Shown here in pieces: positions 23,067-58,493 of a stretch of DNA of 64,000 nucleotides (positions within the stretch are counted from its first letter, which is position 1; every line of letters starts with the position of its first letter). The stretch is taken from the NCBI RefSeq assembly GCF_003918875.1, contig NW_025765607.1, positions 1 through 64,000 on the forward strand, in the 5' to 3' direction. Position numbers and translations under genes: made by a program. The notes beneath the pieces are model-generated. The model had not been told where the DNA came from. It did no database searches and was given only the letters and a program-made list of their open reading frames with translations. The stretch is from Haliotis rubra. Its lineage: Eukaryota.

Positions 23067-26000
23067 ATGGTCAAGGTAGTTTCGGTTGCTATTTTTTGTG
23101 TGACTGCAGGTACGTCTTTCATATCTGTCTTATGAGTTTATGTTAAACTTAATTATGTTCTTTGTTCACATTTGAGACCTTGTTTACCTGATACACATTG
23201 AATGCCGGTTTACTCATTCTACTTCGTTTCTGCCACCTCGTAAGTGACTTCTCTCTACAGGTGTTGTATCAGGTGCCGCCAGTGCCAGTCCAGTGTTGTC
23301 TGCTGTGTCTGACACAGCCAGGTTCAGCTGGGAGATTCCACAGGGAGGTCTGGGGACAGGAAGTACTTTCTATGCTCTCAGTCCTGCTGGTGTTGTTGTG
23401 TTCATAGTGACAGGCACTGGGACATTCAGCCCCACCCCCAACTACACATCTAGACTGGTGTACCAGGGGAACAGAGCAGCCAGGAATGTCACCTTCACCC
23501 TCAGCAACATCCAGACATCAGATGCAGGGACATACACTTGTGGGGCTGGAGGGGCCGCTAGTGTGATACAGAACTGTGGACAGAAGCTTGTTGTCCTGGG
23601 TGAGTGGTTACTTTATTAGTTGTTGTTTAACATAGGATTAATATGGATCATCCATGTTTGTATTCAACATACATATTCCCATGAAAATATAGTATGTCTC
23701 AGCTATGTTACGTGTGTCATTATTACACCAATCAAAGATTATTCGAAATTTAATAAAAGCCCGGGTGTATTAGGTTTGTCGAGTTAATTGATGATCAAAT
23801 CTATTGCACCAATCCCCACGTATCAGAGTTTTAGGATATCTATAAACATGAACGTCTACACTGGTTGCAATGTACTTGTTGTCCGAGAGCAAAAAGGTTG
23901 TTTTCGTAGAACAATTTACATTTGCGATAAGATACCTTGGGTACCGCATCGAATATGCTTAAACCTCTTTTAAATATAAATACAATTAGAGCAACTTTAT
24001 GCAAAGGCCTGTCCTAATCATGGAAGAATAACCGTATACATTTTTTATTTCCAAGTTACAAACTGTTGTAATGTAAGTTAATGTCGCATGTGTGCAAGGA
24101 ACCAATGATGTAACTGATATGTGTAGTGTTTGTAATGATCAATCGCATTCCGTTTTGGGTTATATGGTTTTGTGTTAACCCAATTTGCATAAATCGACAT
24201 GTACAAGCACCTAATTTACATATACTGTATTTTGAAAGGCAAACCCACATCACCTGGTCGTCCACCAGTGTCAACAACACCTGTCTACAACCAGCAAGTG
24301 ACCTTGACCTGCAGCTCCACCTCTACCACTGTCCCTGCTGACCATGGTCTGACCTTGACCTATACATGGCAGCGGGACAACACTGACATCACAGTTACCT
24401 CCCCTGGTTCCTCCTTCACCTTCACAGTGAGTTTCCGGGACAGTCACAGCTACAGATGTAGAGCGAGAGAAAGTCAGGGTCTGGAGTCAGAGTGGAGCCA
24501 GGTGTACAACATGGAGCCTCAGTGTGAGTACGCACGACGACTACCAACACTCTTATCTAATCGTAAAAAGTAACTACTTCTTCACATTTATACATACACA
24601 ATGCATGAATATATGCCATTTTTCTATTGAAATCATGCTTTTTAAACCGATAATGAGGTTTTTTCATGGACTACTGAGGACTGTGGGCTACTTTTGTCAG
24701 AGACAGAGTTTCAAAATGTGCAAGGTGTTAAGCGACAGGAGTGTTTGGGCAAGATGAAACGGGAATATATTCTCTATCGCTACATTCGTCTCACGCAGCG
24801 CAGCACGTCTCAGGCATCGTAATTGCTGCACTTTTAAAATCGACCAGCAAAACACCATTAATGCACTGTAAGTACACTTAGGACCGTAGTGATTGGCGTC
24901 ATCTATTGGTAAAGTGGTAAAGGGGGATAACTGAGGAATGTACCCCCATTGCAAAGAAAGAGTTTGTGACAGAAACAGCAAAACCTAATTTCAACAAACT
25001 GATGCTTACCCGAACTGCAGAAGATAAGTTGTATTGTCTGGTGTCCTATAGTCACGAAAGGAAATATTTTTGCAGTGAAGCCCCGTTAGTCTGGACCCCG
25101 ATAATCCGGATGTCTCGCCTCACCGACGATTTCAGCTTGTTGCCAATCTATGCCTATTTAATTTGCCCTGATAATCCGGAAATTCGGTTTCCGGAACGTA
25201 GCTGTCACCAATCAGTATAAATAAACAGTAAATTGCGTCACAGTCCGGACGCTGTAAGTCGTGTTCACGAACCGTAACAACACCTCCCGGCGGGATGGCC
25301 TAAAAGTCGGGCCAAGAAAAGTCGGGTCGGGCCACCGGGTAATACTAAAAATGGATTGCAGAATATTAAAACGAAACCTGCACATTTGGGTCGATACACT
25401 TCCTGCCTTCACAAATGCATAGTTTGATTGAAAATGTATAGTTAATGGTGAAAAAACCCACACAACAACAATGACTACATACCGAGATTCCCGTAGAAAA
25501 GACACTGTCTTGTTGTTATGTGTTTTCCTTGATATGTCTATGAGGGAAGGTTGCGTGTGACATCCTGGTGTCCTCGGCAGGAAGTGACAGTGTTTTGACT
25601 GCTTTTCTTTCCTTAATTAAGATAGTGGGGTTCAGCATTTAACCTTTGTTGTCTCAGGCTGAATCAGCACAGGATGTTTATGTTAAAGAGACGTGGATAT
25701 CGGCGAGTGTCAATGGGCAAATATGACATGATTATGTATATTAAAAGGAATATTTGAAATCACAAACTTTTTGTATATGTTATAAAGGATCAAACAAAGT
25801 ATGCATTCACAAACACCAAAATTTTTGTTTTCATTGTAAACAATACCAGCTCAAATCAGATAGCCAGCGCGTATGCATATTCTTATATTTACCAATACAC
25901 ATGAAACACAAAATGGTATTATATCTACCTAAATACCACTTCATAAAGTAAAGTAAAAGTGAAGCCCCTTTCTCTCTCCATTCCCAACGATTTAGGAAAA

Positions 26001-29000
26001 TGAAATCCTCGGAAAACAAAATCCGCAATCAAAAGTGTTTAGTCTCTGTTCAGCCCGACTTGGCCCGCGCTGTCAAAAAACAACTTAAACCTCACACATG
26101 TATTCTGATTTGTGTTTAAATCCATAGATTAGTATTATATCTACCTAAATATCAATGTGTGATGCTACAAAATGCCACATGTAAAGATAACTGCTCCGTT
26201 AAAGTGAAGCCCTTGTCTCTCATTTTTCAACATAGCCTCAATCAAAAGTGTTTGGTCTCTGTTCAGCTCGACTTGGCCCGTGCTGTCAAAAAACAACTTA
26301 AACCTCACTCATGTATCTTGAAATGTGTTTAAATCTATAGATTAGTATTATATCTACCTACATTTCACGTTACAGAGTCTCAAAGCGTATATATTTGAAG
26401 CAAACACCTTGCTCAAAGTGAAGCCCTATTTCCTATACATACTCAACAAAGACACAGTGTCACAAGCTTTCGGTCCGGCTTGGCCAGGGCTCTTAAATGC
26501 ATCTTATATCTCACAGATGTATCTTGGATTGTGTTTAAATCCATAGATTGGTATTATATCTACTGTTCAGTGTAAGTATATAGTCTACACTGGTGACAGT
26601 GTTACAGGCAGTGTTGACGGAGTCAGTATACTGTGTCTGAGTGGGGTATTCATGCTTCACTGCGGCATGGTATCTCAGTGAGCTAGCACTATAAAACCAG
26701 CTTTAAGTGAGTTTATGGGGTGGTATGTGATTGGATATAGATGTAAAAACATTTTCGGGCCGACGGAAATGTGTATCGGAATTGGCTGAAGTATTTATAC
26801 GTTTTAAATCGCGTTTCGTTTAACGATTCCACTTTTGGACGTAGCCTCGGTCAGCCAGTTCACAGGCTTCTCGTCTTCCTTGGTTTTAGCCGATTTACTC
26901 GAAATAAAGTTGTTATGGTACGCGTTTGTGGCTCCCGATTGATCAATATTATCATGAGTGTATGTTGCATTGATTAATTGTAGGCATGGTGTTCGTTAAT
27001 GGGTTTATTAGCCAATAATAGATTTGACCCGCCTTGGCCCGGCCCGGCCCGGCCCGACTTTTAGGCCATCCCCCTCCCGACGATGTTTATTTGACTGGCC
27101 TCAAACAATGAACACTCGGTGTCATGGAGTTGACAAGATGAACTCTGCTAACTTTTGAGAATGTCAATTAAAGGTTGTTGTTTTAATTAGACATTAAAAG
27201 CTGTACTCACAAAAAAATTGTATATGTAGTGTGTATATCATATCTCGGTAGCAACTACGTACCGTGGGAGTGTGACCGATCACTGAGGCATTTGATGCTT
27301 TTATTTTGTGTTGGTTCATTGTGGTATAGTTTTCAAGGTTCTTTTCAATGTCGGGGCGATGGGGTAGCCTAATGGTTAAAGCGTCGGCTCGTCACGCCGA
27401 ACACCCGGGTTCGAATCCCCACATGGGCACAATGTGTGAAGCCAATTTCTGGTGTCCCCCGCCGCGATGTTGCTGGAATATTGCTAAAAGCGGCGGAAAA
27501 CCAAACTCAGTCACTCAGTCAGTCTTTTCACTGTCATTTTTTAATACATGTAATTATAAGAAGTGTTTTCTAAATGTGTGGAAGTGCATGTTCATGCAAA
27601 CATAGAGATAAATCGTACACACAGTATCAGTGCCACATTACCCTCTACTCCAGACGGTCCCTACCAGATCTCCTTGACTCCCTCCACCTCCTCCTACACT
27701 GTGACAGAACACCAGGCTCTTCCATCAATCTTATGCTCCGCCCTCTGTAGACCCGGATGTAGCTACAGGTGGTTACACAATGGAACCGTCTTCAGCAGTG
27801 GAGCGGTGCTCCAGGGACAAGCTGACAGATCCAAGACAGGCTCCTACAGATGTCAGCCTTACAACACACACGGGAGAAGTGACAGTGTTACAGTCAGTGT
27901 TGATGTTCAGTGTAAGTATATAGTCTACACTGGTGACAGTGTTACAGTCAGTGTTGATGTTTAGTGTAAGTATATAGTCTACACTGGTGACAGTGTTACA
28001 GGCAGTGTTGAGGTTCAGTGTAAGCATATAGTCTACACTGGTGACAGTGATACAGTCAGTGTTGATGTTCAGTGTAAGTATATAGTCTACACTGGTGACA
28101 GTGTTACAGGCAGTGTTGATGTTCAGTGTAAGTATATAGTCTACACTGGTGACAGTGTTACAGTCAGTGTTGATGTTTAGTGTAAGTATATAGTCTACAC
28201 TGGTGACAGTGTTACAGGCAGTGTTGAGGTTCAGTGTAAGCATATAGTCTACACTGGTGACAGTGATACAGTCAGTGTTGATGTTCAGTGTAAGTATATA
28301 GTCTACACTGGTGACAGTGTTACAGGCAGTGTTGACGGAGTCAGTATACTGTGTCTGAGTGGGGTATTCATGCTTCACTGCGGCATGGTATCTCAGTGAG
28401 CTAGCACTATAAAACCAGCTTAAGTCTGGGCTAGTAGAAGCAGCCGCACATACACATACACACGCATGCACGTCGTCATATGAGCGAAATATTCTCAAGC
28501 AAGACGTTAAACCCAATTTCACCTCACCTCACAGTCAGTGTTGATGCTCAGTGTAAGTATATAGTCTACACTGGAGACAGTGTTACAGTCAGTGTTGATG
28601 TTCAGTTTAAGTATATAGTCTACACCGGTGACAGTGTTACAGTCAGTGTTGATGTTCAGTGTAAGTATATAGTCTACACTTGTGACAGTGTTACAGTCAG
28701 TGTTGATGTTCAGTGTAAGTATATAGTCTACACTGTTGACAGTGTTACAGTCAGTGTTGATGTTCAGTGTCAGTGTATAGTCTACACTGGTGACAGTGTT
28801 ACAGTCAATGTTCCGTATACCATACTTATTTCAGATTGAAATGTTTAGCCATTTTGTTTTAACCAATACCATGTCAATGATGCAGTTGTTCCCCATTTTC
28901 AGACCCAGCCGACATAAGTATGTTTACTGTTTTTTCTCTTTTGGAAAACCTCACATTGAATTCAGTGTTCAGCCATTTAGTTTCAGATGATACAATATCA

Positions 29001-32000
29001 ATGATACAGTGGTTCTTCTTTTCAGATCCAGCCAACATAAGCACTTTTACCGTCAACTCTCACAGTGGCTCAGTGACAGTTAACGAGTCTGATGAAGTGA
29101 TCTTGAGATGCCAGATTGATAGTAATCCAAAGTCAGCCATCAGGTTACTGAATGGAACTGAGGAGTTGACAAGGGCAGATAACTCCGTGACAGCAATATA
29201 TAGACTGGAGTCAGCAGACTGTAGACAAAGAGGGAACTACTCGTGTACTGCCACCAACAACATCGGGGCAGCTGTCACCCAGAAGGTGGAATTGCTGGTC
29301 AGGTGTGAGTACTTTGCACTTCAGCAAATGGTGGTTACATGTGTACAGGTACATGTGATTGTCATTATACCATAATTATTTCACACTCGTTATGGGCAGG
29401 CACAAGTAACACCTTTGGATACAATGCTCGCATGGTAGTGTTATGATTATACTCACTTCTGGTTTTAGATATGTGTTTGTCTGTATCGTCAAATGTCTGA
29501 CAAACTCACAAAATGAATTTAAGAAGCATAAACAATCCTGCAGAATAATTCCTCTGTAATTGTTTTCGAGTACGTACATAAATTTGCTACTTTGATCTTC
29601 ATCTTACCCCTCCTGTGTGACCGGGCTAGTAGTTGTACCTGAGCCAATATCAGTTATATATCAGAATTTAACCAGGTCCACCTCGACTTGACGACTCGAT
29701 TTCCAAGCAACTCAAGTTCCCTGCTAGACTTGGTGGTGACGTGACTCTATCTGTGTCAGTCCTGGCCTACCCCCTTCCTACATTTACCTGGAGTAGATCG
29801 AACAGCACCAGCCAGGACGTCAATGGTTCCTCCAGCCCTGTCTCAGACATCTCAGTCACTGCCAGACTACATCTTACTGACCTCCAACAGCAGGACTTCG
29901 GGGACTACAATCTGTCAGTGGGCAATGGCGTGGGCAGTCCAGTCACATACACAGTCAGTGTAGTGCCTGTAGGTGTGTTGTGCTTTCAGATTTGCTATTG
30001 AAGCTTAAAAGATTCAACTGTTTTCCGTCCGTCCGTGCACATTTGTCTTTCCGGAGCTGAACTCTAAAACCGTTCACTATTTCTTCACCAAACTTGGCAC
30101 ATAGATAGATCTGGTGGTGTACTGGTCCCTTTTGGTAGTTTTGGAATTCTGAATAAAATATTTTGGCATTTCAATGGCAAAAAGTTTTACTTAAACAGAA
30201 ATTAGTGGTGGTGTACTTTTCCGGAGCAGAACTCTAAAACCGTTGACTATTTCTTCACCAAACTTGGCACATAGATAGCTCTGGTGGTGTACCGGTGCCT
30301 TTTGGTAGTTTTGGAATTCTGAATGAAATATGTTTGGCATTTCCATAGCAACAAGTTTGACATAGACTGAAATTGGTGATAGTGGTCCTTTCTGGAGCAG
30401 GACTTTACAAAACCTTTCAATACTCTCCTTCCACTTTTCTATATACACACCTAAATATTTGACATAATCATAACTTGTAGATATAATCATGAAGAGTATT
30501 TTGCCATTGCGGGGGATATTGATGACTTTGTCTTCTTGTTTATTCTGTATAGGTGACGTTTCGATCGACATAGATTCTAATGCCGTTGTCAAGCAATAAT
30601 GAGTTGTATATCCATAACAATTGTCCTCATTTTTTATTTGAACTTTTCAACCAATGGAATTACATTACAATAATGACGTTTTTATTTGTTTATTTCTTGT
30701 AAGGGCCACCTCAGACACCTACACAGTTTCGAGATCTGGATAATGCAACAGCGTCGTCAATATGGTTCTCGTGGCTGCCTGGGTTCAATGGTGGACGCCC
30801 TCAGACGTTTCTAATTGAGTATCTTCAGTTTGCGACAAGAACGTGGACTGTGTACAAATCCTATGATGATCCTGGCGAGATGATGGTTGTTGAAGTGACC
30901 GGGCTTACACCAGGAGAGATTTACATATTCCGACTACAAGCTAGAAATGACTACGGGGATTCTGATAGTTATGTATTGGTAGAAGCGGTGACTGCTGGTG
31001 GTAAGTGTGTCTTCATGACCATCACTCACTGGTAACACTATGTATCTTATGGAAAACGTGTTTGCTGCAACTGAAGGAAATATATGGGTATCTTTCATGT
31101 ATAATTTCTTATTTGGGTATATATTCAGAGAACAGAAAAAGAGTAATTTCTGAGTCCTTGTACGCTAATGCACTTCGTGTTTCACAAAGGGAATGTAAAT
31201 GACCATATATCTGAATAAATATAATTATGTAGCCTAAGTAGACTAAGACTAAGATATCAATTCATCATCAGATATTAGGGCGTAAATATGAATATGCACA
31301 ATCAACGTTGATTTAGACAAATGGTTTCGCAATTCTTTGGAATTACAGTAAACATTTATGTCGGGGTTTGTTGTGATGAGGATGGGCGTGAATAACAATG
31401 GGACTGAACTGCTTGGGGAACTGGGTAAGAACTGGTTCCTCATTGACCCCTGCTTGTTGTAAACGGTGACTAACTGGTTCTGGTTGTCAGACTCTATTGA
31501 TGCATGTTATCAAGTCACTGCATGGTCTGATGGAATGTCTACAGACCGACGTCTATGTCACTAAGATATTGCGAGAAGCGTCTAAGCTAAAAATGAGCTA
31601 TATACGTTGTACCCGTCTTTGGAATTTATCATGTGTCATGTATATTACAACCCACCGCTTGCAAGGGTAGCATCTACAGATAAATAGTGAAGACCGAATC
31701 TCAAAGTTAATTTTATCCTAAGGGTTTTACAGAAAACTCTTTCGTGACACCAAGTTGTAGATAAAGCATTATTATCATACTTGTGAGGAGCCCAATGCAT
31801 AACGTTTCCTCAACGTAAACTTGCAACAGTGATATTACGTTGTGACACAAGGTTGCACAGTGATGTGATAATAACGATGTCAGAAATAATGGAAATTACG
31901 TCTCTGTGTCTTTAGTATATTAATTGGATGGAAATAATGCACTACCGTCTTGTTTTCTGCCGAATTACAAATAATTCGATGTACGCTCTTGTTCTTGCAA

Positions 32001-33534
32001 TTTTCGGGAAAGAGACAGTTTACGTCGCACCACCGTTTAAGAAACGATGAATCATAACATTGTGTAACAGTCGATACACGACGTTTTGACAACGTATGTA
32101 TGTAATGTTGCTGTAACGGTGTGAAATAACTTTTTATAATGACGTCATATTAATGTGGCGACAGCGTTGTATCATGACGTTACCAATGTACATCCGGAAA
32201 CGCCAAGTAAACGTTGTGTGAGCTTGGCACACACACTAATGATTTGTGCGAGGCTTGTGCTTGTCACTACAATATTGCACAGGGCTCAATTGAACCCCAA
32301 ATGCACACAAATGACAGTCATATTTTATGCTGTTTTGATTACATAATAGATCCACCAGACCAGGAAAAGCTCGAAGCGTCATGCATCGGTACAGGGGTAA
32401 TAGCAGGAGCTACAATAGGAACCTTTCTTCTTACCCTGCTCATTGGAGGGATGGTTCTAATGGTGCTGTACCGAAAGGGATACAGAGTTGCAAACATTCT
32501 AAAAGGTACATAGTATAAGTACAACGCATGTATTTTTATAGTTTCCATCCACAGTAACTTACAGAAAAGGTATTTGTGTCTCTCCATTTCGTTTATGATA
32601 CGACATGTTGATATTTGTGAAGTGTGTTTCAACCACCATGACATATTTACTATTCCTGTTTTCCAGGAGCTGCACGAAAAAGGTAATCCATATATCAATA
32701 CAGTTAACTGAAACACTGCATGTAAAACTACGAAATAAGTAAGTAACTTACAATAGGTTAACTAAAGCATATTACTTTTACATTATGAGGTTTATCACCC
32801 GATTGTTTTAAAAACCTGACCTGATGTTGTTTTGTAGCTCCAGCCATCTTGAACCTGTGGAAATGGACAACAGAGGATATTCATCTCTAGGTATGTACTG
32901 GCTGCTGGGTGTTTCCCTCTAGTTGATATTACAACCATCTCTCGATCTGTTAGCACTAAATCATTACAATATGTTTCAGATCAGATCGCGGCTCCAGCGC
33001 AGTATTCAAATGTGGAGGAGGGATCTGAAAAACAACAGTACACACAGTTGAAGATATATGAGAACACAAAAGGTAGGGGCAGCTTGGTTCATATTGTTTA
33101 ATCTCATGTTTCACATGGATGTATTGTCAGCTTGTTGAAGAACCAGTTCAAAGAATTGAGGTGTAATTTGTATTTGGACATATATTATTTAATTAATCTT
33201 ATCTTCAGTGGATGCTGCAGCAGATACAAGTACCTATGAGGGCGTGACAGAGACTGCTCCTGTGACCTATGAGTCCATCAGGGCATCGCCATATCAGAAC
33301 ACTGGGGCACATCCTCAAGGTAACCAAACCATGAAACACTCCTGGTGATTCTAATCGCGTTACATCGTCATCGATCAACTGTGTTCTTAAGTGTTTCAAC
33401 AGTAGTAACCCAAAGCATATGCTTCCCCTTCTGTTCGAGTTTCATACGTTTACTTTATGTGATATGTTCAGTTGATGTGATATTTGTATGTTTAATTACC
33501 TTGACTTCTGTACATTTCAGGTCTTGACGAATGA
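23067..33534 (+). CDS. Gene A: IgSF type-I membrane receptor (signal peptide, V-like Ig, 4 further Ig, FN3, TM, multi-Tyr tail), ~746 aa, apparently intact; nephrin/CEACAM/hemicentin-like annotation class
   Basis: 13 coding exons, all GT/AG and phase-compatible with no stop: 23067-23109, 23261-23599, 24239-24523, 27654-27911, 29026-29304, 29676-29972, 30704-31000, 32350-32505, 32667-32682, 32838-32890, 32980-33072, 33209-33319, 33521-33534. Motifs: SDAGTYTC, TLTCSS..YTW..YRCRA, YGP..CSALCRPGCSYRW, CQIDSNP..GNYSCTATN, FN3 SWLPGFNGGRPQTF, TM GVIAGATIGTFLLTLLIGGMVLMVLY. Probable 5' UTR exon ends at 22260. Confidence 0.88.
25074..25260 (+). mobile_element. Left end of a probable non-autonomous Tc1/pogo-type element, interrupted by the 25292-27072 insertion
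   Basis: Starts CAGTGAAGCCCCGTTAGTCTGGA with repeated GATAATCCGGA motifs; right end not found. Confidence 0.45.
25292..27072. mobile_element. Non-autonomous TIR element with 9-bp TSD (Mutator-like)
   Basis: Perfect 22-bp TIR GGGATGGCCTAAAAGTCGGGCC / GGCCCGACTTTTAGGCCATCCC. Flanks are CCTCCCGGC (25283-25291) and CCTCCCGAC (27073-27081). Three internal ~210-bp repeats at 25915-26563. Confidence 0.85.
27352..27523 (+). mobile_element. SINE family A, full length
   Basis: Matches the 15991 copy; flanking repeat TCTTTTCA(A/C)TGTC. Confidence 0.9.
27881..28810 (+). repeat. 54-bp minisatellite made of exon end + splice donor (~8.5 + ~5 units, split by a SINE)
   Basis: Unit GACAGTGTTACAGTCAGTGTTGATGTTCAGT|GTAAGTATATAGTCTACACTGGT. 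The variant pattern repeats every 4 units (216-bp higher-order repeat). Confidence 0.95.
28336..28530 (+). mobile_element. 5'-truncated SINE (V-domain-like core) inserted in the minisatellite
   Basis: CAGTGAGCTAGCACTATAAAA core, GACGTTAAACCCAA..(CACCT)n tail. Confidence 0.65.
30022..30541 (+). mobile_element. Helentron-associated non-autonomous element (HINE/DINE-like)
   Basis: (TCCG)n microsatellite, ~170-bp tandem core (30049, 30219, partial 30390; TTCACCAAACTTGGCACATAG), 3' GCGGGGGATATT...CTTGTT end. Confidence 0.7.
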
Positions 33535-35562: not shown

Positions 35563-37050
35563 TCGTGTTTAAATAAACGATAATGTTCTCTGCCGACTGC
35601 AGGTTACACCGAACGACCAAATGCAGTCTTCATGGCCAAAGTCTGTCGTGTGGCCAGAGATGGTTGGAGCTAAGTCGTCCGACTGCAGGATACTAAGTGG
35701 TGGTTCATTGTGTGTCATTTGTTAGCATGTGTTAGGTTTGTCCACATGTAGTGTAACCTCAAACACCCAACAGTGTTTGTAAATTGTTATCAAAACAAAA
35801 CCATGCAATTGGTCTCGAATATTCACATCATTATTATGTCGTTTCTTTTAAAAAAATTGTACATGTTTTGTGTATTATATTGTCCCAGGGTATGTTAATA
35901 GAAAAGAAACCAAGGATTTCACATATGTAATGATAAAAGACTGAACTCCATGGATTTGACACTTTTGTTGTTTGCTATACGCAAATGCATATGTATGTGT
36001 TTCATTTATTCATTATCATGTTGTGATATGTTGTGGAACTCGGGAAGTCCCTCTCTACTGCTTCAATATTGGAGACTGACATATTGAAGAGTTCTACAAG
36101 TTTGTTTAGAGACTAGTCTTTGAAACTAGTTCAAGTCACACATTAAATCTGCAGGTATTCTGTATGAATATATACCGACTCTTGGTAATTACATCAATGG
36201 GTATATAGAGTCTACACAGCCACATATTAAAACACATATACAGACACTCAGACAAATAGTACGTACACATATACCCGGTCGCCCAACACTATATGTGACG
36301 CACGACCTATTTGATTTGAGTGACATGTAACCTGTAGTGAATATCCAGGTGTTATGCTACGTCTACACAGACACATTATACAAGCAACAAAGGTACACTG
36401 TCGCCTATCATAATCGCTAAATGTCTTGACACATGACCTACTTCTCTGAATACCCGTCTGAATGACACACATCAAGCCATACATATCCAGCTAGCATATC
36501 AACACCGGAAGTATAATTACATACACTGTTCACCAGTGCTAGTATCTATTACTTGTGTCACTAGTTTCACACACCACCAACATGTCCATGCTGTACCTCC
36601 GTCTTATCTTCACAGTTGGGACTCGACTGGTGGACGTTCCTCACAAACAACGTGGTATGTACACGTATCTTACTTGTATGTCTATAACATGTTTTAGTTG
36701 TCACTGCATTAGGGGCAACGCAACGAGTCTCACGCCTCAGGTCCCACACACACAGTCGCCTACAATAGAACCAGGAAGTAGATTTTATGTACATCAGTAC
36801 ATGTCAACGGGTAGTACAGGTCTGCAGCTTTATAACTGGGGCCGGATTCACTAAATTTCGCCGAATATTCTTGAGCCTTAAGAATTCTTAAGTCTGGTAA
36901 GAATTCTTAGTTTCCATAGCAACCTATCTAAAACTAAGATTTTTGCTTAAGCAATATTCATCAAACCTCTTAGTGCTTAAGAGTTGTTCTGAACTTAAGA
37001 GTCCTCCACAGGTTACTTACGCACTTAGAATTTTCTTAAAGTAAACAAAG

Positions 37051-38118
37051 ATGGCCGCCTATGCATTCATCGATAGAACCAACATTTTAGAAACATACAC
37101 AGAAACAGAGTTGAAACGAAGATTTAGATTATCAAAAGATGGTATACAATTTGTAGTAAGTCTCATTTCCAATGAAATTTCGCCTCTCACTCAAAGAAGT
37201 CATCCTTTATCAAAGTTCTACTGACGCTGCGTTACTTTGCTTCACGGGCAAAGTACAGCTGTGTAATGCGGACCTCATTGGTGTTTCACAGTCTTCAGTG
37301 AGTAGGGCCATTAACCAAACAATAACTGCATTGTCTGCCCCTGCCATTGTTCGACAGTTCGTTTCGTTTCCTACCAGTCCGACTGAAATCCGACGAAACC
37401 AACTTGGTTTCTATAGCATCGCTAACTTTCCCGAAGTGGTTGGGGTTATAGATGCACATTCAGATTATAGCACCATCCGAGCACGAACCTGCTTATGTGT
37501 ACAGAAAGCAGTACCACAGCATCAATACTCAGGTTGTCTTTGACCACAGTTCACATATCATTGATGTAGTTGCGAAATGGCCCGGGTCCGCTCATGACTC
37601 GCGCATACTGACCGAGAGCGGCGTTTGCACTTTGTTCTCTCGCCACATGATGCCTGCCGGCTGCCTCTTGCTTGGAGACAGTGGATATCCATGTAGAGAC
37701 TGGCTCCTCACTCCTTATATTCAGCCTAATCCCGTCTCTCAGACAGCATACAACAGGCATATCGAATCTTGCAAACGACATGACTTTTCTCGATTAGTCA
37801 ATTAGAGTTATGCCCCTGTCAAATATGACTATAAGTGAAACTGGGTTGCATTAAAAAAGTGATGTGTTCTTTCCTGGAACAATCTACAATCCTAGAATAC
37901 ATCAAAAGCTTTCTGACAAATACATAATGAAATGACAGTAAACATAAAAGAATACTTTAGGGCTGAATAGATTATTTATCTACATCTGTATCATGTTATG
38001 TATTTACATGCCAGTTACAAATTGCAAAATATGCTACTGAAGATGTTTTTCATAACATTTGATTTTTTGACTGACAGAGCTCATAAGAGGACACACAGCA
38101 TGGTGGAGAGGGGAATAA
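37051..38118 (+). pseudogene. HARBI1-like transposase, frameshifted and truncated
   Basis: LKRRFRLSK, GVSQSSVSRAI, FPEVVGVID, YVYRKQYHSINTQVV, KWPGSAHDSRIL, LLGDSGYPCRDWLLTP, YNR|AHKRTHSMVERGI. Confidence 0.9.
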
Positions 38119-38238
38119 GGAACGTTTAACTTCTTTACAAATCAACAAAATATACATTAATTATTGTAGGAGGCAAATACTTCACAGTTACACATACAAG
38201 GTGATAACATTTTAAAGTGCACTCAAAATTTACGACCG

Positions 38239-48600: not shown

Positions 48601-51600
48601 AAACTTTATTTTTTTACAAAACATATATCAAGGGTTAAGTCGTTGAAGAAACGTTGATACTGAAGACTTAATGTCTGTTGGACGTGAACCTGATACTTCT
48701 GACAACAAGCTGACACATTTACGTTGTCACCTCATTGTGGATCAAGGCCTCCGTACAACACAGTAAATGTGGAGATATCCAAATATGATACATGTACAAT
48801 GAATCAGAGATTGAATATGTACACATACCTACACAGCCTGTCTGTCAGCTACCCGGAAGTAAATTGGTATTGTCAGCTCTACATACATCGCCTCTACCTG
48901 TGTATGTCGGTGGGCTGCTGCAAGCTTCAGTCAGTGACACGAGTCCACGTGTGTTTCTGGAGTTGATTCCACTACTTATTCTGCTAGATACTGCCCAGAT
49001 ACGTCGTTGTAGTAGGTACACATTGTCACTTATACTGAATGTTGTTTGTGTATAACAAACGTTCACTAACCTGTGTGCACCTGTGCATCTCTTGACGGCA
49101 TTGACAGGACACATAACTTCCATACAAACCTTGTGCTGGGAATTATCTACTTTGACAGATGGTTTTCTCTCTAGCACATGTGACATATCAGATGATACCA
49201 TATTTCTTGTCATAGTTCTTGTCATATGGCGTTTGGAACGCAAGTATCAACACACAAGTGTGAACAGGGTGTCTTGAAGAGAAACGCGATTTTCATTGTT
49301 TACAGTTACCTCCCTTAGTACACTGCTCAAAGAGTTCCCCCGATAAGGACTCACAGATCTGCACAGTACCTCATCTGAAGCAGGGCGATTACCGATGACG
49401 TGATTGGGAAGATATTCAATGCAGTATTAAATCCAACTCATCCTCAAGTACTAATCTTCTATGAAGTGAAAATAAATCAACATTTCTATTACAATACATT
49501 AAGCTTAAACAATATATTTGATTATTAAAAACCAAAAGAGAATAAGACGCCGACAGGCTCTCTGCCAAACTAGGTCTTGTTGGTGAAATCACATCAAACT
49601 TACAGAACATCCGTTATTAAAATAATAATGTAATATACATGTACACAGTATCGTTTCTGATGCAACTTTGAAAGTAAGAAATAATAACTAACTGTACATA
49701 TAACAACATATTAGGAGCAAGGGCGACATTGTGCTGTTCCATATGTTACCAGAAACATATATAACAGCTGCATTGATGTCCCCAATATCAAACTGACACA
49801 CCCAGATGACATTCTGTTCGAAACAGCGTTATAACATAACAAGGTTACCAGCAACACGGAAAACATACAACCTACGCGCCATACTGTTTCAGAGTCAGCT
49901 CCGGTTCTTGCCACCAACAGACGTGTTCCTGTGGAGGGTGTCAGCTTCACCATCACCTGTACACTAGATGCAGCTATCACTTCCACTGCACGGTTCATTA
50001 AAGGTCCTACTTCTGTCCAGGGAGGCTGCTTCTCATCCGGCAGCTGTAGGACATCTGTGTCAGGATACACTCTGAGTCTGGACAGTGCATCCAGGATCAT
50101 GTCTCTAGACATCGCCTCTCCAGATTCCACCAGAGACAGCGGGACTTGGAGATGTAGTGTTGGCGCTGCAGTGTCAAATAGCATCACACTGTCTCAGTTT
50201 GCAGGTTGGTTTTATGTGTGTCAATAACATCATGATGAATGGAAACCCTTTAACTGTGGCTGAACCTGTGTGTACATTGCTACATCCGAGGGCAGGCCCC
50301 ACGTCAAACCTCACACCACCAGGTTGTGTTGTCAAAATAGCACTGTTGTTTGAGAAGACATTTGGTATGATTGTGAACATGTTGGGTGGCTTTCATTTGC
50401 ACTAAATTTCGTGTGAAAAGGATTAAAACTTTATTGGAAAGTACAACAATTGGGTAACACATATATTTATATTAATATATTATATATTTTTCAACTATGT
50501 AATGGAAACATTTTTATTTATTTATTAGCCCTCACTGTAACGAGATCATTACTATGACTGAGTATTTTGCTTGTTTTTCGGAGCTGTTAAAATACATAGG
50601 ACAAACTTATCCATTGTTTATTCAAGTCAAGGAATCCACACATCTCTTATACTCTGTTGGTAAAAGTCTCTCCGTAACGTACAGCGAAACTGAACTGACA
50701 ATATTTCCACTTAATTGGTTGTTTCTGATTGGTCCACATACATGTCGACGCCCTGTCATGTTAGTCTCTCCTCTTGTATCCAGCTGACACATAGGACATA
50801 ACTGGTTAAAAGTGTGTTAAACATACACACACTTCACGTAGTCATGGGTAATGGAACAAGAGAACTAAATATCATACAAGGTTATAACATTGTTATGACA
50901 CATTTGGTATTTTTGTGTTTTTTATAATACCATTGTGGCCGTGCAAGGTGCTTAAAGGTTTAGTTATGTAAACAGACACTATGTGTCGATACCAATCCTT
51001 CACTGACTGAAACGTATTGCGCTGTACGATCTAGTTAAACCACGAGGACTAATAGTTGACATCAAATCTTTACTGTATTACTCTTTACACGATGGCAGAG
51101 CGAACTGTATTTGGTTTCTGAGATGATATTTTCTACACCGGCGATTAATCTAAGGTACAAAAGAAGTCATAACGATGTTATCATGATCTAAATTAACAAT
51201 CCTTGTTTAGGGCTAACTGACGTTTTGTATCAGGAGTTCGTCTCCTCTATACGTTAGGGTACATGCTACCAATAAAGAAAATGATTAAAAGTTTCAAGAC
51301 GGTTCACGTTTAGGTTAATATCTTCTATTTATAAATTCAAATATATTTATCATTATATAACATCATATGGTTTATATGAAAAATATGAACGACGCACTTT
51401 TACTGCCAAATTTAAGTAAAAATAGTCACGTCATCTTGCACGGATGTATTGTTGGACAGTGGGCGTTGGACAAATTAGAGAACATTTTAAGGTCCCAGTT
51501 TACTTGTGAGTCAAGCCACTAAAACATGAAACAAGCTGTTTGCAATGCAATGAAGGATACTGCAACAGGCTATGCCAAAACGTACGTTTGATTACAATGT

Positions 51601-51921
51601 GGCAGACAAGAGTGGCGTACGGAAGCCAATTCATTGTGATGTAATGTGAAAGGCGTACTTTATTGCCATAATAGTCGGTGCCATTGATCTTTTAGCGAAG
51701 TATCTCAGAAAGACGTGTAAATATCAACATCAAGGCGATATTATTATCTGTCCTTACCAGCTGTCCTAGACTGGAGCTCTGTGACCTTCTCAACACTACT
51801 GACTTCTCTCCCGTCCTCCGTGACCCCGCAGAACACCATCTCCGTCACTGTGACCACTCCGTGTGCTGCCACTGCCGCCGTCATCACATGGGGATACCAA
51901 CAGGTAAGACTCTTCCCACAA

Positions 51922-52290
51922 GTCCATCCCTCCCAGCAGTACATCTTCCACTCAGGGATCATGTCCACCAGGCCAGGTCCAGACAACCAACACTCTGTCT
52001 CTACCAGGGAACACAGTCAGACTATCTAACTACTGTTTTGTGTTTACAGGGTGTGAGTGGCGTCCCTCCCAGCAGTACATCTTCCACCCAGGGATCATGT
52101 CCATCAGGTCAGGTCCAGACAACCAGCACCCTGTCTCTACCAGGGAACACAGTCAATCTATCTAACTACTGTTTTGTGTTTACAGGGTGTGAGTGGCGTC
52201 CCTCCTAGCAGTACATCTTCCACCCAGGGATCATGTCCATCAGGTCAGGTCCAGACAACCAACAACCTGTCTCTACCAGGGAACACAGTC
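51922..52290 (+). repeat. 136-bp tandem triplication of acceptor + exon start
   Basis: CTATCTAACTACTGTTTTGTGTTTACAG|GGTGTGAGTGGCGTCCC with exon starts at 52050 and 52186; three exon-like copies. Confidence 0.92.
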
Positions 52291-54032
52291 AGTCTCTACA
52301 ACAGGCAGGTGTCTCTCACCGTCAGTGTGGAACATGACTCCTTTGATCCCCCGACGTATACCAAGTCTGTCACTTATAACACCATACAGTTCCTTGGTAG
52401 GTACACATCAACAGCCAATCATCCTGTTGTTAACTCATGGTTTCTATTGCAGCAAAAAGAAAGATAAGTTTCACATCGGCAGTAAACAAAGACAGTGTCT
52501 TAGCAAAAGTCTTGGACGGACACCCAATTATTAAATGTGGTGTTTTATGCGCCACGAATGGAACACAGATCATAAAAAATGCCACTTAAGAAGCTGTATC
52601 TGTTTGTAATGCATGTTATGCTTCAAACACCTCGTACACGTGAACCAAGGTAGGAAGAAATGAACTTCGCAAACTGAAACCAACAATCGGTTATACCAAC
52701 TTGGGTTGTCCGTCAAGACGTGATGGCGTATTTCTACGACGATGTCGTATTGGCCACAGTCGGTATACTCATGGCTATCTGCGCAAAACAGATGGAGATG
52801 GACCTAGTTAGTGTTTTCACCATCAAACATATTCTGTTTGGTTGAGTGGACTTTTCAAGCAGGCATCTCATTACCAACTATTTGAGAGAAAATTTGAGAC
52901 TTCACGCCTGTGTCTGTTCATCCTGAAACTAATGGTCCTCATCAGTGTATATCGAGCTATTCACATTTTGTTGGATATATTTTGTATATTTTAAAACTTT
53001 ATCCTTGGCAAACTGCGAGTAGTATAGAGTCGATACACATGCATTTTGTGTCGAATTTTTGCACCGGACATCACGAAAGATTGTTCTCTATCAACCAATT
53101 TACACGAGAAATGTTTCGTTAAAGCAAAGTTGTTCTGAAAAGTCGAATTTAGAAACAATTGCGTAATTATGAGGGATTGTATGTTTTCTAACCCTTAGAC
53201 CAATACTTTTCTACATCTCCACTCTAAGACAGCGCAATCGTCCAGCACAGATACCTTGTGTTGCCGTCTTTAATGGAGATTAAGCAACCACTCTAAACAC
53301 AAGACGCGGCAAACAGTGTCTGGTGTAGTGGTGCAGGATTCTAAAATGTCATGGTGGAATATTTATCATATTGAAATGCGTCAAATTGGTGCAGCTACTA
53401 TTGCTGTCAGATTTGTTTTATTTTCATGTGGGAAGATCAGTTGATATTCTTGTAAATATACTAGCAGAATATTCACTTTCTTTAAATGGCCTTTTGTAAT
53501 ATATCCGATTTTGTTACAACCAATGGGTGCTATGTCGATATGTTTCCAGAAGAGGTACACAAGACCGTACTTTCAAAATATCTCAAATCAGCATCGAACA
53601 CTAACTCGGAGGTTCTTTATAGCATTTTGTAAATATCACGATATCATCAGCTCTGTGGTTTATGGTACTAAAATAGTGATATCCGGTATAATTGTTTGTC
53701 ATGCCGATGTTAGCATCGATGAGTTCATTTGTTACAGTCCCGGTCAGCTCTGTGACACTGGCAAACATCGGTTCCGATAATGAGGAGATAGGACGTGAAG
53801 CAAATCAATCTTTGACCTTGACCTGCGTGACCTCAGCCAGTTTTCCCATTTCCACTGTGACCTGGGTGACCTTGCCATCAGGAACGTCACCTACAGTCAG
53901 CACAGAGACGACATCTGGTGTCCTGGTGAAGAGAACAAGCTCCGTCACATTCACTGTCAGTAGGAGTGACCAGGGGAAGAGCTTTCGCTGTCAGGCTGAA
54001 AACATCAACGGTCAGACATCCCCGTAGTCTAC

Positions 54033-54690
54033 CAGAGCCACACTGGAGGTCTGGTGTAAGTAGACACATTCTAGCAGAGATATGTTAGATGTTTGATTTA
54101 AGTAGAGACAGTCTGGAGCAGAGTGTAGACAGATTAGATGTTTGATTTAAGCAGAGACATGTTAGATGTTTGATTTAAGTAGACACACTAACTGGAGGTT
54201 TGGTGTAAGTAGGTGACAGAGCCACACTGGAGCAGAGACATGTTAGATGTTTGATTTAAGTAGACACAGTCTAACAGAGCCACACTGGAGGTTTGGTGTA
54301 AGTAGACACAGTCTAACAGAGCCACACTGGAGGTTTGGTGTAAGTAGACACAGTCTAACAGGGCCACACTGGAGGTTTGGTGTAAGTAGACACAATCTAA
54401 CAGAGACATGTAAGATGTTTGATTTCAGTAGACACAGTCTAACAGAGCCACACTGGAGGTTTGGTGTAAGTAGACACAGTCTAACAGAGCCACACTGGAG
54501 GTTTGGTGTAAGTAGACACAGTCTAACAGAGTCCGATTTGAGGATTGGCATAAGCAGACACAGTACTAGTCTTGTTGACCAATGCTGGAGGTTTGGAGGG
54601 AGTAGCATGGGTCTAACAGGGCTACACGTTTGGTGTAATTTGTCCAACAGAGTTATACTGGAGGTTTTATCTGAGTAGACACGCTGAAGG
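54033..54690 (+). repeat. 42-bp minisatellite made of exon end + splice donor
   Basis: Unit ACAGAGCCACACTGGAGGTTTGGT|GTAAGTAGACACAGTCTA (e.g. 54274, 54316) plus a diverged variant. Confidence 0.92.
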
Positions 54691-57600
54691 TTGGATGTGA
54701 GTTGTGTGACAGGTATGCAATGTCATGTTTACCAGAGCCATAAGACATGTTTGGTGTCAACAGACTTCTATCTATTGATCAGTCACAGTGTAACACAGCA
54801 GAGATGAAGCGTTTGTGAAAGTAGGTGATTTGTACAAAGAAGATAGAGTCTTCAGAGCTACACTGAACGATTGCAATAATTATACGAAACAAATTGGTGG
54901 TTTGTGACAAAGTGACAAAGTGTAACAGAATAAAGGTAAAGCTGATGCGGACACATATCTGTCAGATGTACGCTAGAGGTTGTGTATCAGTAGACACGGT
55001 TTAGCAAGTAGCACTGTAATGATACATAATTGTGCTGCATTCCAGTCGGACCAGAGCAGGTTGATATGACAAAACCAGACAGCAACGTGACTTTAGAGAA
55101 CAGTAACCTGACATTGACCTGTGGTGCCACCGGTTACCCCAACCTGACCTTCACCTGGGACTACAACTCTCAACTTCAGGCCAAACAAAGGCAAGGCAAA
55201 TGTAAGATGTCACGTCAGAAACACAAGAACCTCCCCCACTAAGACTGGCTCTGTGTCACTAGATGTCAAATGTGAGTATTCCCATTGAGGAAATATCGAG
55301 CTAATTGTATTGAGGCCATTCTGAAAAAAAGGTTCCTAGTCTCTGCTGTTACATCTATACTTCATACATTGTCATTTATACTTCATTTATACTTATACAA
55401 TCTTGATTAATCCTATTACAGACCCACCACGTGCCCTTCCTTCCATCACACAGTTTCCGGATGTGATGTCTGAAGGAGACCCACAGACAATCAGCTGCTC
55501 GGTGACAGGAGGAAATCCTCTAGCTACGATCACATGGTCCTGTCCTGGCACTGGATCTGCATCGGTCAGTGACAGTGATCAGACAAGGACATCTACTCTC
55601 TCCTTTACTGTCAGCAGGAGTCAACATGGTCAACAGTGTCAGTGTCTGGGGGCGTGACAGTATGGAGGATACAACTACACTGATGTCAGGACATTCAACG
55701 TCAGCTGTGAGAATTAGTGTATCTGGAGAGGTTGATAAGTACAGAAAGCAATTCCCCACACTAAGATTTGAAGGATATATAGCATCCGATTTAAGATATC
55801 ATTGTGGCCAAAATATGTCTATTTACGTTATGTTATATACCACTCCTTTCTCGAACAATTTTCCACATGACACGAATCAGACACTAAAAAGTGACAGTAC
55901 TTTGGTATGGTGAGGACCGGTTATTTTCACGTCTTCAGGTGTACCATCACCTGTGTTGGAGCAAGCTGTTGATGAATTAAAGTGCAGCTAGGTTCTAACC
56001 GCGGGTTATCTTGTTTCGCAAAAGTTAAGAAGCTTAATGGTACAGTTTTCTTCAACAGATATACATATTTATATCGATATATGTGGATGCTGTAAACGAT
56101 ATTCAATTACGCATAGATATGTCTGTGCATTATCTTTAGGTTTCACTTTAGGTAGATCTTTAGAAGCTGTATCGACGAGGTAGATGATACTTTTGTAAAA
56201 CACGTCACGTCACACAGAGGGATAACAATGCCTCAGTACTAACTCAGTAGTTATACAGTCAATATATATTTCATTTCATTCGCAGGTCCCACAAACCCAC
56301 AACCACTCAAAGCCGACTGTAACATGACAGGTGCAATAGCAGGAACCGCAATAGGAACCCTACTTCTTACCTTACTGATTGGAGCACTAGTTCTGGTTGT
56401 CCTCAACAGGAAGGGGTTCAGGTTTGGAAACGTCATGACAGGTATGTTGTTAAATCTCATTGTATTGGAAGTATAATCATGAAGTATTTAATGAAATATT
56501 TACAAAATAGAGATGTTTCATATCAAAGTGGCTATATTGATGACTATTATGGTGAATGTCAAAGTTACCAGGGAATCAGTTCTGACTCAAATGCGCAAAT
56601 CCAGGGGTGGTAATATATTAACGATGAAACATTATATCCTTCAGAGCAGAATTTTTTCTTTCATTAAATAATTAACGTTTCACATTTCTTGTTCTTCCTT
56701 TGCAAACCCTGCACCAGTAACCAACATTATCCAAATTGTCGAATCTTCATTTGTGTTTATTTCAGTGTACTAAATGTTCATTCTCTTTGTTTCAGAAAAT
56801 GCTTCTCGAAAAAGGTATACTTCATTTGTAAATAAACTGTTTTGAAATAAGTTTGAAATACGTTAAATGTCACATACTGAAGGTTCGTTTCCATTATTGA
56901 ATTCAATAATCGATCGCCTTTACCTTTGTAGCACCAGAAATCCTGAAATTGAAGAAATGGAAAACATAGGATATTCATCACTAGGTAGGTTCAACATATC
57001 AGGTTTGATACAGGTGGTCACATTTAGTCATACACCTCGTGTTTTATGTATTCATGTTGATTTGTTACAGATCACATCAACAGTCCAGCTCAGTCTCCAA
57101 CCACGGATACAGAGGGTTCGGAAAGACAACATTACACACAGCTGAAGGTTTATGAGAATACAAGCGGTATATATATACAGTTTCTTACATTACTATAGAA
57201 CTCAATCATAAGTGAAGTGAAGACATGCCATATTGCAGGTATTATACATGTATGTATCGTTGTGTTTACGTTTGGAAGGGTATGTAATAATGTGTATATA
57301 TTTTGTTTAGTCGATGCCAAACCAGAAACAAGTACCTACGAAGACATGACAGAGACGCCTCCTATACCATACGAGTCCATCAGCGCTTCTCCATACCAGA
57401 ACAGCGGCTCTCAACCTGAAGGTACCCACAACTGAGGTGATCTATCGTATTGAATGAGAGGAAAGTTACAATAATGAATTGTACACAAGAAGCAGTGTTA
57501 GTTTCCAACAAATACCTAAGCTTCTGTTCTAGTGTAGAATGCAATATTTTTATTTTTGTCATATTCTGTACGATAATAATGTGACACATTTAACTGATAT

Positions 57601-58493
57601 TCTGTTTTCAGATCCTCACTATAGGAATGCGTGAAGAAACACCAGATGAGACGGACACTATGTCACGGGATAGTAATACACAGCCTGTGAACTGATAGGT
57701 TTCTTAGCTCTCATGTAGTGTGTTTTAATGTCATCATTTTCTCGTTACCTCATAGTATTCCCCTATGATATTTCCAAGTAGTATGTACATTATAGTAAAT
57801 AAACCCAGAACATAACAGTCGTTTATGTTACTTGCATGGAATCCGACTGGTAGAATTTCTTGCACCGCCTTTTGTCCACATTGACGGTGCACACATTAAC
57901 ATGTTTATTGCGTATGTCTTTTTCTATAATAGTAGATGAGTTCACGAGAGGATATGCCATAATGAAGGATGAATGGTGTTCATTGTCTGTTTGTATCAAA
58001 TTTCTTTTTAAAGATTACGAGTTATATCGGACATAAACACTGAATATATACTGCACTCGTATTACCACTGACATTTTAGTATTAAGACAACATTTTCTAA
58101 AGTATTTTTGCTTATTTACTGTCTTATTGAACTGGAAAGGTTCCTCCGATACCCACTGCACCAAATACACACGTATCCATCCATATTGGGAAATTATCTG
58201 CTGTGTTAAGAGTTCTACATAAAATATTATAAATAATATAACATCTTTGTGTACGTAATACAACAAATCCGCAAACTGCTGCACAGACCCGCTGGGTTTG
58301 AGATTACAGTGTCACAATCAGTCGTTTGAATATCATGTCAACAGATATGGTGAGTATTTTTGTTGCTCGTGGGCTACATCACAACACAAAAGTCAGTCGT
58401 CTGTATGTGCGTATTGTAAATCAAGGTCAGTTACACGGATCCATATTATGTACGTTTTGTATAGGTCTTTGCACTAAGGTGCCAAGTACAGGC

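Follow-up and report, generated by a model that had tools for sequence, protein, structure and literature searches.

A tandem unit of three immunoglobulin-superfamily receptor genes with a common tyrosine-bearing tail in the abalone Haliotis rubra

A 64-kb stretch of Haliotis rubra DNA (assembly GCF_003918875.1, contig NW_025765607.1, positions 1 to 64,000; hereafter the window) contains three collinear genes of the immunoglobulin superfamily (IgSF), designated A, B and C, which were recognized by self-comparison of its reading frames and DNA. The genes, the minisatellites beside their exons and the transposase remnant described here lie on the + strand, and coordinates are those of the window unless a contig or locus is named. 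Different ectodomains are followed in the three genes by the same transmembrane (TM) exon and the same small tail exons. The region is probably one unit of about 42 kb, in the order A-B-C, of a family of type I receptors that is large, arranged in tandem and, as far as detected, restricted to Haliotis, with modular ectodomains, a tyrosine-bearing tail and a putative role in recognition. The gene models were built by hand from stop-to-stop frames, self-comparison, splice-site scans and paralogue comparison, and the queries used in searches were single exons or database proteins, never joined spliced models.

The TM exon is exactly 156 nt long in all three genes, is preceded by AG and followed by GT, and is in phase 1 at both ends. 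It lies at 32350–32505 in A, at 44411–44566 in B and at 56286–56441 in C. Its amino acid identity is 63% between A and B, 72% between B and C and 56% between A and C, and the exon of A, compared with the whole 1.38-Gb genome, matches its counterparts in B (E=8e-13) and in C (E=6e-11). The tail exons follow in an identical order, with canonical splice sites in an alignment of the 3' regions and with phases 1, 2, 1 and 1: a micro-exon of 16, 19 and 19 nt in A, B and C, an exon with GYSSL, an exon with YTQLK..YENT, and a last exon with YE..YESI..PYQN. The same junctions are read straight through in RefSeq proteins of paralogues. In A, the micro-exon (32667–32682) is a conserved block between AG and GT that enters in phase 1, leaves in phase 2 and is included in the RefSeq paralogue proteins. 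It is followed, according to the three-gene alignment, by an exon ending in GYSSL (32838–32890), an exon containing YSNV, YTQL and YENT (32980–33072) and the last coding exon with YEGV, VTYESI, PYQN and the stop codon (33209–33348). A conserved GT at 33320 in this last exon is a possible alternative donor, and the equivalent position serves as a splice site in two RefSeq models of paralogues, P0031 and P0039. By the same alignment, the tail of B (44894–45570) consists of the micro-exon at 44894–44912, the GYSSL exon at 45059–45114, the YTQLK exon at 45213–45308 and the last exon at 45461–45570, and the tail of C (56796–57435) of the corresponding exons at 56796–56814, 56932–56984, 57071–57166 and 57311–57435.

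Gene A is intact. Its putative exon 1, whose position was assigned from the sequence, begins with an ATG at 23067 and encodes a hydrophobic signal peptide up to a phase-1 donor, CAG/GTACGT (23067–23109). The first ectodomain exon, D1 (23261–23599), has 339 nt, is in phase 1 at both ends and encodes a V-set-like Ig domain. Four further Ig exons are bounded by splice sites and recognized by Pfam: D2 (24239–24523; Ig_2, 35.8 bits), D3 (27654–27911; Ig_2, 29.6 bits), D4 (29026–29304; Ig_2, Ig_3 and I-set) and D5 (29676–29972; Ig_3, 37.1 bits). The membrane-proximal exon at 30704–31000 encodes an FN3 domain (PF00041, fn3, 35.3 bits against a cut-off of 25, scored on 30703–31032). All 12 exons are open and have canonical splice sites, and together they amount to 2256 nt or 752 codons, a size that matches RefSeq proteins of 749–751 residues from other Haliotis species. 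The predicted protein has the layout of a type I receptor, with the hydrophobic exon 1, a tail of about 110 residues and, between the ectodomain and the tail, a membrane span in which some 23 hydrophobic residues precede basic ones.

Gene B is a paralogue with five Ig exons and a single nonsense codon. D1 (40742–41065) is a weak Ig match (Pfam Ig_3, E=0.008) delimited by splice sites, and D2 (41610–41864) is an Ig domain supported by Pfam and splice sites. D3 (41998–42318; 49 bits) and D5 (43579–43863) are of the C2-set_2 type, also with splice sites, and the D5 exon of the B/C type has 11 copies in the genome at 87–100% identity. The nonsense codon is an in-frame TGA at 43056–43058 within D4 (42931–43221). 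Four paralogues encode glycine (GGA or GGG) at this codon, which rules out the stop as a feature of the whole family. The search for exon 1 of B was ambiguous: a candidate at 38249 was rejected, having neither an ATG nor a GT donor, and a conserved stretch of methionine followed by hydrophobic residues near 35950 is an alternative candidate.

Gene C is clearly a dead pseudogene. D3 (53738–54058), a C2-set Ig domain by Pfam, contains a stop codon at 54025–54027 where paralogues encode Gln; D4 (55046–55271) is shifted in frame by the absence of 65 bp that correspond to 43051–43115 in B; and in D5 (55422–55706) a TGG has become TGA at 55655–55657. These three domains are still recognized by profile. 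The exon taken as exon 1 of C (48939–49011) starts with ACG where C2 and hC1, two paralogues considered below, have ATG, so the start codon has probably been lost. D1 of C (49893–50204) is Ig-like by its pattern of Cys and Trp residues and has no Pfam match; the genome holds seven full-length copies of it at 77–100% identity. The D2-like exon, with approximate boundaries at 51761–52400, has no Pfam match and is broken by stop codons and by a 136-bp tandem repeat (51927–52292). This repeat is found in C-type D2 exons elsewhere (L004:3778–4389 and C2418:9107–10393), with copy numbers that vary among paralogues, and because 136 is 3n+1 the reading frame changes from each copy to the next, so that every frame is used in turn. 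In D2 of C2, a frame of 204 codons stays open across the repeat copies.

Each Ig or FN3 domain is thus encoded by one symmetric phase-1 exon, and the domain exons are followed by the fixed series of TM exon, micro-exon and three tail exons. Pfam places Ig_2, Ig_3, I-set or C2-set_2 domains above the cut-off in D2–D5 of A and in D3 and D5 of both B and C, and it finds FN3 in A; B and C are without FN3. An earlier reading of the window from its sequence alone (the sequence-only reading) had described A as a V-type domain, four Ig domains and FN3, and B and C as a different stack of five Ig domains that lacks FN3. The Pfam results agree, with the qualification that D2 of C is degenerate and unmatched. 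The same reading had the three genes sharing the 156-nt TM exon and the small tail exons, for which coordinates, splice sites, phases and RefSeq paralogues are in accord, and it had put the ectodomain introns in phase 1, which is true of all Ig, FN3 and TM junctions examined.

The window belongs to a larger array. Its contig is referred to as C717, and the exon-by-exon search took in the whole genome. Paralogues were inspected at the sequence level on C717 (64–124 kb) and on a second contig, C2418 (1–140 kb), and the clusters on C353, C2791, C366 and C2387 were followed through match tables and 3.3-kb loci around D1 exons. The A-B-C unit recurs on C717 at 64–103 kb as A2-B2-C2, and the segments at 20–62 kb and 62–106 kb are 84–93% identical in DNA, introns and intergenic DNA included. 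More units are present on C2418 at 87–92% identity, in segments collinear with the second unit of C717, and the exons of the H. rubra protein XP_046545506.1 map to this contig at 100%. In the genome, the TM exon has 41 matches (about 34 at E<1e-4), with some 35 TM exons attributed to the family in all, the last exon 32 copies, and the FN3 exon of the family type about 21 copies at 66% identity or more, each 0.5–2 kb upstream of a TM exon. The D1 exon has 17 close copies and a few at 42–43% identity. The copies are distributed over the six contigs named. Some RefSeq models of such clusters are chimeric or leave out exons: P0154 extends over a pair of adjacent genes (L023, H. rufescens, 10001–34073), D4 of P0031 maps to a different gene, and P0164 omits the frameshifted D3 and FN3 of hA2.

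Among the 14 copies inspected on C717 and C2418, A and hB1 are free of lesions in every exon examined, and C2 is open apart from its odd D2. Nonsense or frameshift changes are present in B, C, B2, hB2, hA1, hA2 and hA3. Copy hC1 lacks D5 and TM, hA5 runs off the end of its contig, D3 of A2 could not be placed, and D4 of hA4 exceeds the reference by 7 nt. Evolution of the family is by birth and death, through segmental duplication, gene conversion and unequal crossing-over, with the consequence that adjacent exons have different histories. The assembly may also have contributed: the family size and part of the mosaicism would be inflated if divergent haplotypes were represented as separate contigs and RefSeq models were chained across paralogues. 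The collinearity of C2418 with the second C717 unit and the models P0154 and P0031 are what this explanation predicts, but two A-B-C units stand on a single contig, the order hA3, hB1, hA4 on C2418 has no C-type gene between and is not collinear with C717, and the exon trees described below were built from genomic exons. We regard it as somewhat unlikely.

To our reading of the databases, the family is real and previously undescribed. When the TM segment and tail of a full-length H. cracherodii member were compared with 5.8 billion proteins, 38 matches were obtained, all from Haliotis (H. cracherodii, H. rufescens, H. rubra and H. asinina), and no relative of the tail was found outside the genus. 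Their automatic names include turtle homolog B-like, nephrin-like, hemicentin-2-like, CEACAM-like and CD22-like. All 38 have membrane-proximal domains of the A type and differ in their distal parts. Some have the canonical V-set D1, others a second V type (about 42% identity) or a third N-terminal set; D1 is duplicated in places, and FN3 may be present or absent. Gene models that run neighbouring paralogues together or leave out broken exons account for part of this variety. The four species all retain the canonical A-type architecture. No protein of the B/C type was among the 38 matches to this A-type query, a search for which no full-length B/C-type query was available. Exons of the B-type D2 and D3 adjoin an H. 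rufescens gene, which is the one record of the B/C type outside H. rubra, and the 10-kb surroundings of two H. cracherodii genes contain no B/C-type exons. Among 1.84 billion representatives, the FN3 exon as query gave seven family members, RefSeq proteins of H. rubra and H. cracherodii at 64–85% identity, among the 150 matches listed, most of which are giant multi-FN3 proteins with 30–36% identity per domain. Literature searches found no paper on this abalone receptor family. The enumeration by TM and tail that the sequence-only reading had proposed yields a set of 38 proteins with common proximal and differing distal domains, and its description of an uncharacterized molluscan receptor family is upheld, for receptors of type I, by relatives confined to Haliotis and by the literature searches.

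The relationship between B and C changes from exon to exon. At the DNA level they are 93.7% identical in D5, about 84% in D4, 82% in the TM exon and 56–58% in D3, and the D1 domains are not significantly similar (28% over 90 residues, E=0.19). The similarity had been supposed to fall off outward from the membrane. The near-identical D5, at about 94%, and the dissimilar D1 were correctly seen, but identity drops in steps, and D5 stands higher than its neighbours, the TM exon included. The number of synonymous substitutions per site (dS) between B-type and C-type copies follows the same steps, at 1.6 in D3, 0.4 in D4, 0.1 in D5 and about 0.35 in TM.

Identity matrices of the copies likewise vary by exon, and trees were computed for single genomic exons, rather than gene models, by maximum likelihood with approximately unbiased (AU) tests. 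In the D3 tree, the B-types are split from the C-types with 100/100 support. The D4 tree gives the same split at 71/71 (not starred) and joins C with C2 at 100/99. The TM tree joins C with C2 (99/97) and B with B2 and hB2 (100/99), and it rejects a group of C and hB1 (AU p=0.016). Conversely, the last-exon tree joins C with hB1 (99/97) and rejects C with C2 (AU p=0.009), and the D5 tree rejects the split of B from C (AU p=0.007) and pairs B2 with C and hB2 with C2; these p-values are indicative, because the groupings were chosen with the identity matrices already known. A comparison of A with its H. cracherodii counterpart also shows unequal depths, with a dS of 0.17 in D2 and 0.75 in TM. The exon trees and the dS steps together demonstrate gene conversion or unequal crossing-over among paralogues, with breakpoints in introns.

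The contrast between A and the other two genes is older. In the TM and tail module, A differs from B and C by a dS of 0.65–0.82, at a ratio of nonsynonymous to synonymous rates (dN/dS) of 0.32–0.43, and the introns no longer align. A recent gene conversion as the source of the similarity between the tails of A and B was rejected on these grounds, the introns being unalignable and dS about 0.7. In the ectodomains there is no positional pairing of domains between A and B or C, and what similarity exists is generic to Ig domains, with E values no better than 1e-4. D3 of B and D3 of C, by comparison, still have 46–49% of residues in common at a dS of 1.6, so the contrast is not easily put down to plain divergence. 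The better reading appears to be an ancient exchange of modules, in which the A-type and B/C-type ectodomains would have been joined to a common TM and tail module by ancient recombination in introns, that is, by exon shuffling.

An account that dispenses with shuffling would derive the A-type and B/C-type genes from duplication of a whole gene, after which the ectodomains diverged fast with gain and loss of domains while selection held the TM segment and tail. Such a history accommodates the age of the split in the tail module, the capacity of Ig domains to diverge beyond recognition, and the ease with which symmetric exons are lost or skipped, as in the RefSeq model of hA2. At the same time depth, however, even weakly constrained domains should have stayed alignable, as D3 of B and C has, and the domains of A have no positional partner in B or C. 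The sharp step in dS between B and C exactly at the intron between D3 and D4 moreover shows that intronic recombination does occur at this locus. We consider the account without shuffling unlikely, and prefer the old exchange of modules. Modular, mosaic evolution of the family is well supported by the sequence comparisons. According to the same comparisons, the mosaicism demonstrated goes back for the most part to gene conversion or unequal crossing-over between genes of the tandem array and not to classical exon shuffling. The proposal that the family diversified by exon shuffling consequently stands in part: the per-exon trees are significantly incongruent, which the sequence-only reading had named as support for shuffling, but mostly for the reasons just given, and shuffling between the A and B/C types is deduced from rates.

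The distal domain D1 of the A-type receptors is more variable than D2 and D3. In an alignment of 16 canonical A-type D1 sequences, 17 of the 112 columns have an entropy above 1.5 bits, compared with one of 94 in D2 and two of 85 in D3, and the variable columns form three patches within an almost invariant framework. The Pfam V-set profile scores D1 of A at 24.7 bits, just under the cut-off of 26. An AlphaFold2 model of the domain has a mean confidence score (pLDDT) of 86 and the nine strands of the V-set fold, including C' and C'', and the top 50 Foldseek matches to the model are antibody V domains with TM-scores (a measure of structural similarity) of 0.6–0.73. In this predicted fold, the variable patches map for the most part to the BC, C'C'' and FG loops and their surroundings; these loops are the positions of the complementarity-determining regions (CDRs) of antibodies. 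The domain lacks the canonical Cys of strand B and has, in 25 of 25 sequences, two invariant Cys residues, one in strand F at position 93 and the other in strand G at position 105; in the model, these possibly staple the FG hairpin. For the 17 genomic D1 exons, with loops defined from the AlphaFold2 model and pooled, dN/dS is 1.23 in the loops (bootstrap 0.81–1.81), 1.53 in C'C'' alone and 0.58 in the framework. The variation of the loops fits diversification of a binding surface, and D1 would be the tip of the receptor that binds a ligand.

The tail, in turn, is conserved. Seven of its tyrosines are retained in 24–32 of 32 proteins from the four species, and the tyrosine of the YESI site in 31 of the 32. 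VTYESI and STYEGV of A, and IPYESI of C, match the pattern (S/I/V/L)xYxx(I/V/L) of the immunoreceptor tyrosine-based inhibitory motif (ITIM), as a pattern match only, whereas APYESI of B falls outside the consensus with Ala at position −2. YSN., YENT and YQN. match YxN sites of the Grb2 type, and the family consensus YEGM is a YxxM site where A has YEGV. A further pattern, YSSL-x8-YSN[LV], resembles the activation motif (ITAM) and is found only in A-types. The family consensus of its second half is YSNL, A itself has YSSL-x8-YSNV with Val at +3, and the second tyrosine, present in 24 of 32 proteins, is missing from B and C. Binding of a ligand would lead to phosphorylation of the tail tyrosines and to recruitment of proteins with SH2 domains; by their consensus, the [VI]xYESI site could recruit phosphatases of the SHP or SHIP type, and the YxN sites adaptors of the Grb2 type. 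The membrane span of B contains a Glu (..LLIEGL..), which is found in B-types and in some A-types of other species, including H. cracherodii, where A and C have Gly. This acidic residue could pair with a partner chain. Variable distal domains on a conserved tyrosine-motif tail, in tandem with pseudogenes, had been noted from the window alone, and the array, the entropy of D1 and the conservation of the tail all agree with that description.

Several repeats adjoin the exons. Immediately at D3 of A lies a 54-bp minisatellite of 17 copies (27879–28812, found with Tandem Repeats Finder, TRF), whose unit consists of the 3' end of the D3 exon and its GTAAGT donor, and the same array adjoins D3 in paralogues. 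D3 of C is accompanied by a 42-bp minisatellite (54249–54564, TRF), again with a unit made of exon end and donor, which is also present in C2 and hC1. Both unit lengths are multiples of three, and such arrays recur at the same junction at C717:74129–76059 and 99322–100815 and at C2418:97552–98396; they may promote unequal exchange. The B-type D2 exons carry partial duplications that resemble these exon-end and donor minisatellites. A different, 52-bp minisatellite of 28 copies (38710–40168, TRF) is situated upstream of D1 of B and also upstream of B2.

Outside the genes, a lone Ig-like exon fragment upstream of A (19007–19246) is 38% identical to D3 of B and contains a stop codon; possibly it represents the remains of a further gene of the family. 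Between A and B, a remnant of a Harbinger-type transposase is recognized at 37452–37802 (Pfam DDE_Tnp_4, 83.4 bits); it is frameshifted and spans 37045–37805. Two stretches, 58676–58975 and 52644–52842, look like tails of non-LTR retrotransposons, the first with a weak zf-RVT match and the second with no match in Pfam. Downstream of C, a 116-bp satellite (10 copies, 92% match) occupies 60582–61745 and is found again at the corresponding place on C2418 (65393–66429). A short repeat, dispersed in several copies and containing an open frame that is conserved (..RWGSL.VKA.ARHAEHPGS..), is present at 27330–27570, 16010–16138 and 12778–12911, in introns of paralogues and at C717:97039–97242, and is probably an element resembling a short interspersed nuclear element (SINE).

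A role in immunity or allorecognition is a hypothesis for this family, and its likeliest setting would be recognition of non-self or of cell surfaces on haemocytes. To our knowledge, abalones are solitary animals with no known allorecognition phenotype. A more specific proposal is that the genome encodes a germline repertoire of dozens of V-set receptors, with CDR-like loops kept diverse by selection and reshuffled by conversion, and that the ITIM- and ITAM-like tail and the switch between Glu and Gly in the membrane span make them gastropod paired activating and inhibitory immunoreceptors for pathogen recognition by haemocytes. This proposal is speculative, and we hold it to be improbable in its full form.

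The following points weigh against a recognition array as described here. NCBI names the genes after neural adhesion molecules (turtle, nephrin, NCAM and syg-2). Two of the three genes in the window and at least five of the 11 copies inspected elsewhere are broken, so that much of the array may be inert, and some of the copies on other contigs, at 87–92% identity, could be divergent haplotypes and not paralogues. The 95% bootstrap interval for the D1 loops includes 1, so that relaxed constraint may explain the loop value and positive selection is not proved. For whole exons, dN/dS is below 1 everywhere (0.2–0.67), with the highest values among ectodomain exons in D1 (0.46–0.67), and diversifying selection on its loops is a possibility. 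Short tyrosine motifs easily match consensus patterns, and the p-values of the AU tests carry the reservation already given.

Some of these points lead to a different function. The genes could be a lineage-specific expansion of IgSF molecules for adhesion or neuronal wiring, in the manner of Turtle/IgSF9, Nephrin/Kirrel/SYG or Dpr/DIP, with D1 serving homophilic or heterophilic matching of cells and the tail signalling in adhesion and not in immunity. The automatic names point to adhesion molecules, an ectodomain of Ig domains with FN3, and C2-set_2 domains such as those of B and C, are typical features of adhesion molecules of the nephrin and nectin type, all exons are under purifying selection overall, and four species have preserved the canonical layout of the A-types. 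Set against this are a tail with no relative outside Haliotis in 5.8 billion proteins, the high load of pseudogenes with turnover of copy number and gene conversion, and a concentration of variation in loops equivalent to CDRs with a dN/dS of about 1.2. In haemocytes of H. discus hannai, moreover, a gene named "protein turtle homolog B-like", which may or may not belong to the family, rose 6 h after challenge with Vibrio (PMC11250055). An adhesive or neuronal function is in our view unlikely, and a putative function in recognition is the reading with which we continue.

Clustered IgSF receptors with fast turnover and tyrosine-motif tails are central to innate immunity in vertebrates and to allorecognition in a few invertebrates, and we know of no such family that has been characterized in gastropods. 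The abalone genes form a large family hidden beneath misleading automatic names, with a V-type tip that varies where antibodies vary. The cluster also offers a clear natural illustration of the remodelling of receptor architecture by symmetric phase-1 exons, gene conversion and minisatellites at splice junctions. Abalones are farmed and suffer heavy losses to Vibrio, withering syndrome and herpesvirus, which makes a candidate repertoire of recognition receptors directly testable against resistance traits; if the proposal of paired immunoreceptors were true, the V-set repertoire would be relevant to resistance against these same agents.

Among known systems, Turtle/IgSF9, nephrin, hemicentin and DSCAM resemble the abalone proteins in their strings of Ig domains with or without FN3, and this generic Ig and FN3 similarity is the reason for the NCBI names. 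Turtle/IgSF9 has five Ig domains, two FN3 domains and a conserved long tail common to other phyla. Gene A, with one FN3 domain and a tail of about 110 residues whose relatives are found only in Haliotis, does not fit as its orthologue. The Alr genes of Hydractinia, an unusual IgSF family in a histocompatibility complex (bioRxiv 10.1101/2022.03.04.482883), are likewise an invertebrate cluster of unusual IgSF receptors, a likeness by description. In D1, the abalone family differs from Alr: the Cys of strand B is absent, yet a nine-strand V-set fold is predicted.

The nearest functional analogue, again compared by description, is CgNCAM1 of the oyster, a molluscan type I receptor in which three Ig domains, FN3 and TM are followed by a tail with two ITIMs. 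It is expressed in haemocytes, where it recruits SHIP2, and it binds microbes (PMC11841013). Like the abalone family, it combines Ig, FN3 and TM with an ITIM tail; unlike that family, it has three Ig domains and was described as a single gene, with no clustered diversification mentioned in the abstract. The vertebrate KIR, LILR, SIRP, CEACAM and Siglec/CD22 receptors have no sequence relationship to the abalone family beyond the Ig fold, and the abalone tail was found only in Haliotis. They also lack the membrane-proximal FN3 of the A-types, and neither a basic residue in the membrane span nor a short-tailed activating partner was seen in the abalone family, some copies of which have Glu in the membrane span instead. 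In genomic organization, however, the two resemble each other, with tandem arrays, pseudogenes, gene conversion, one phase-1 exon for each Ig domain and a single TM segment. In both, variation is concentrated in the distal domain, and the abalone tail carries ITIM-consensus and YxN sites, as does that of CD22.

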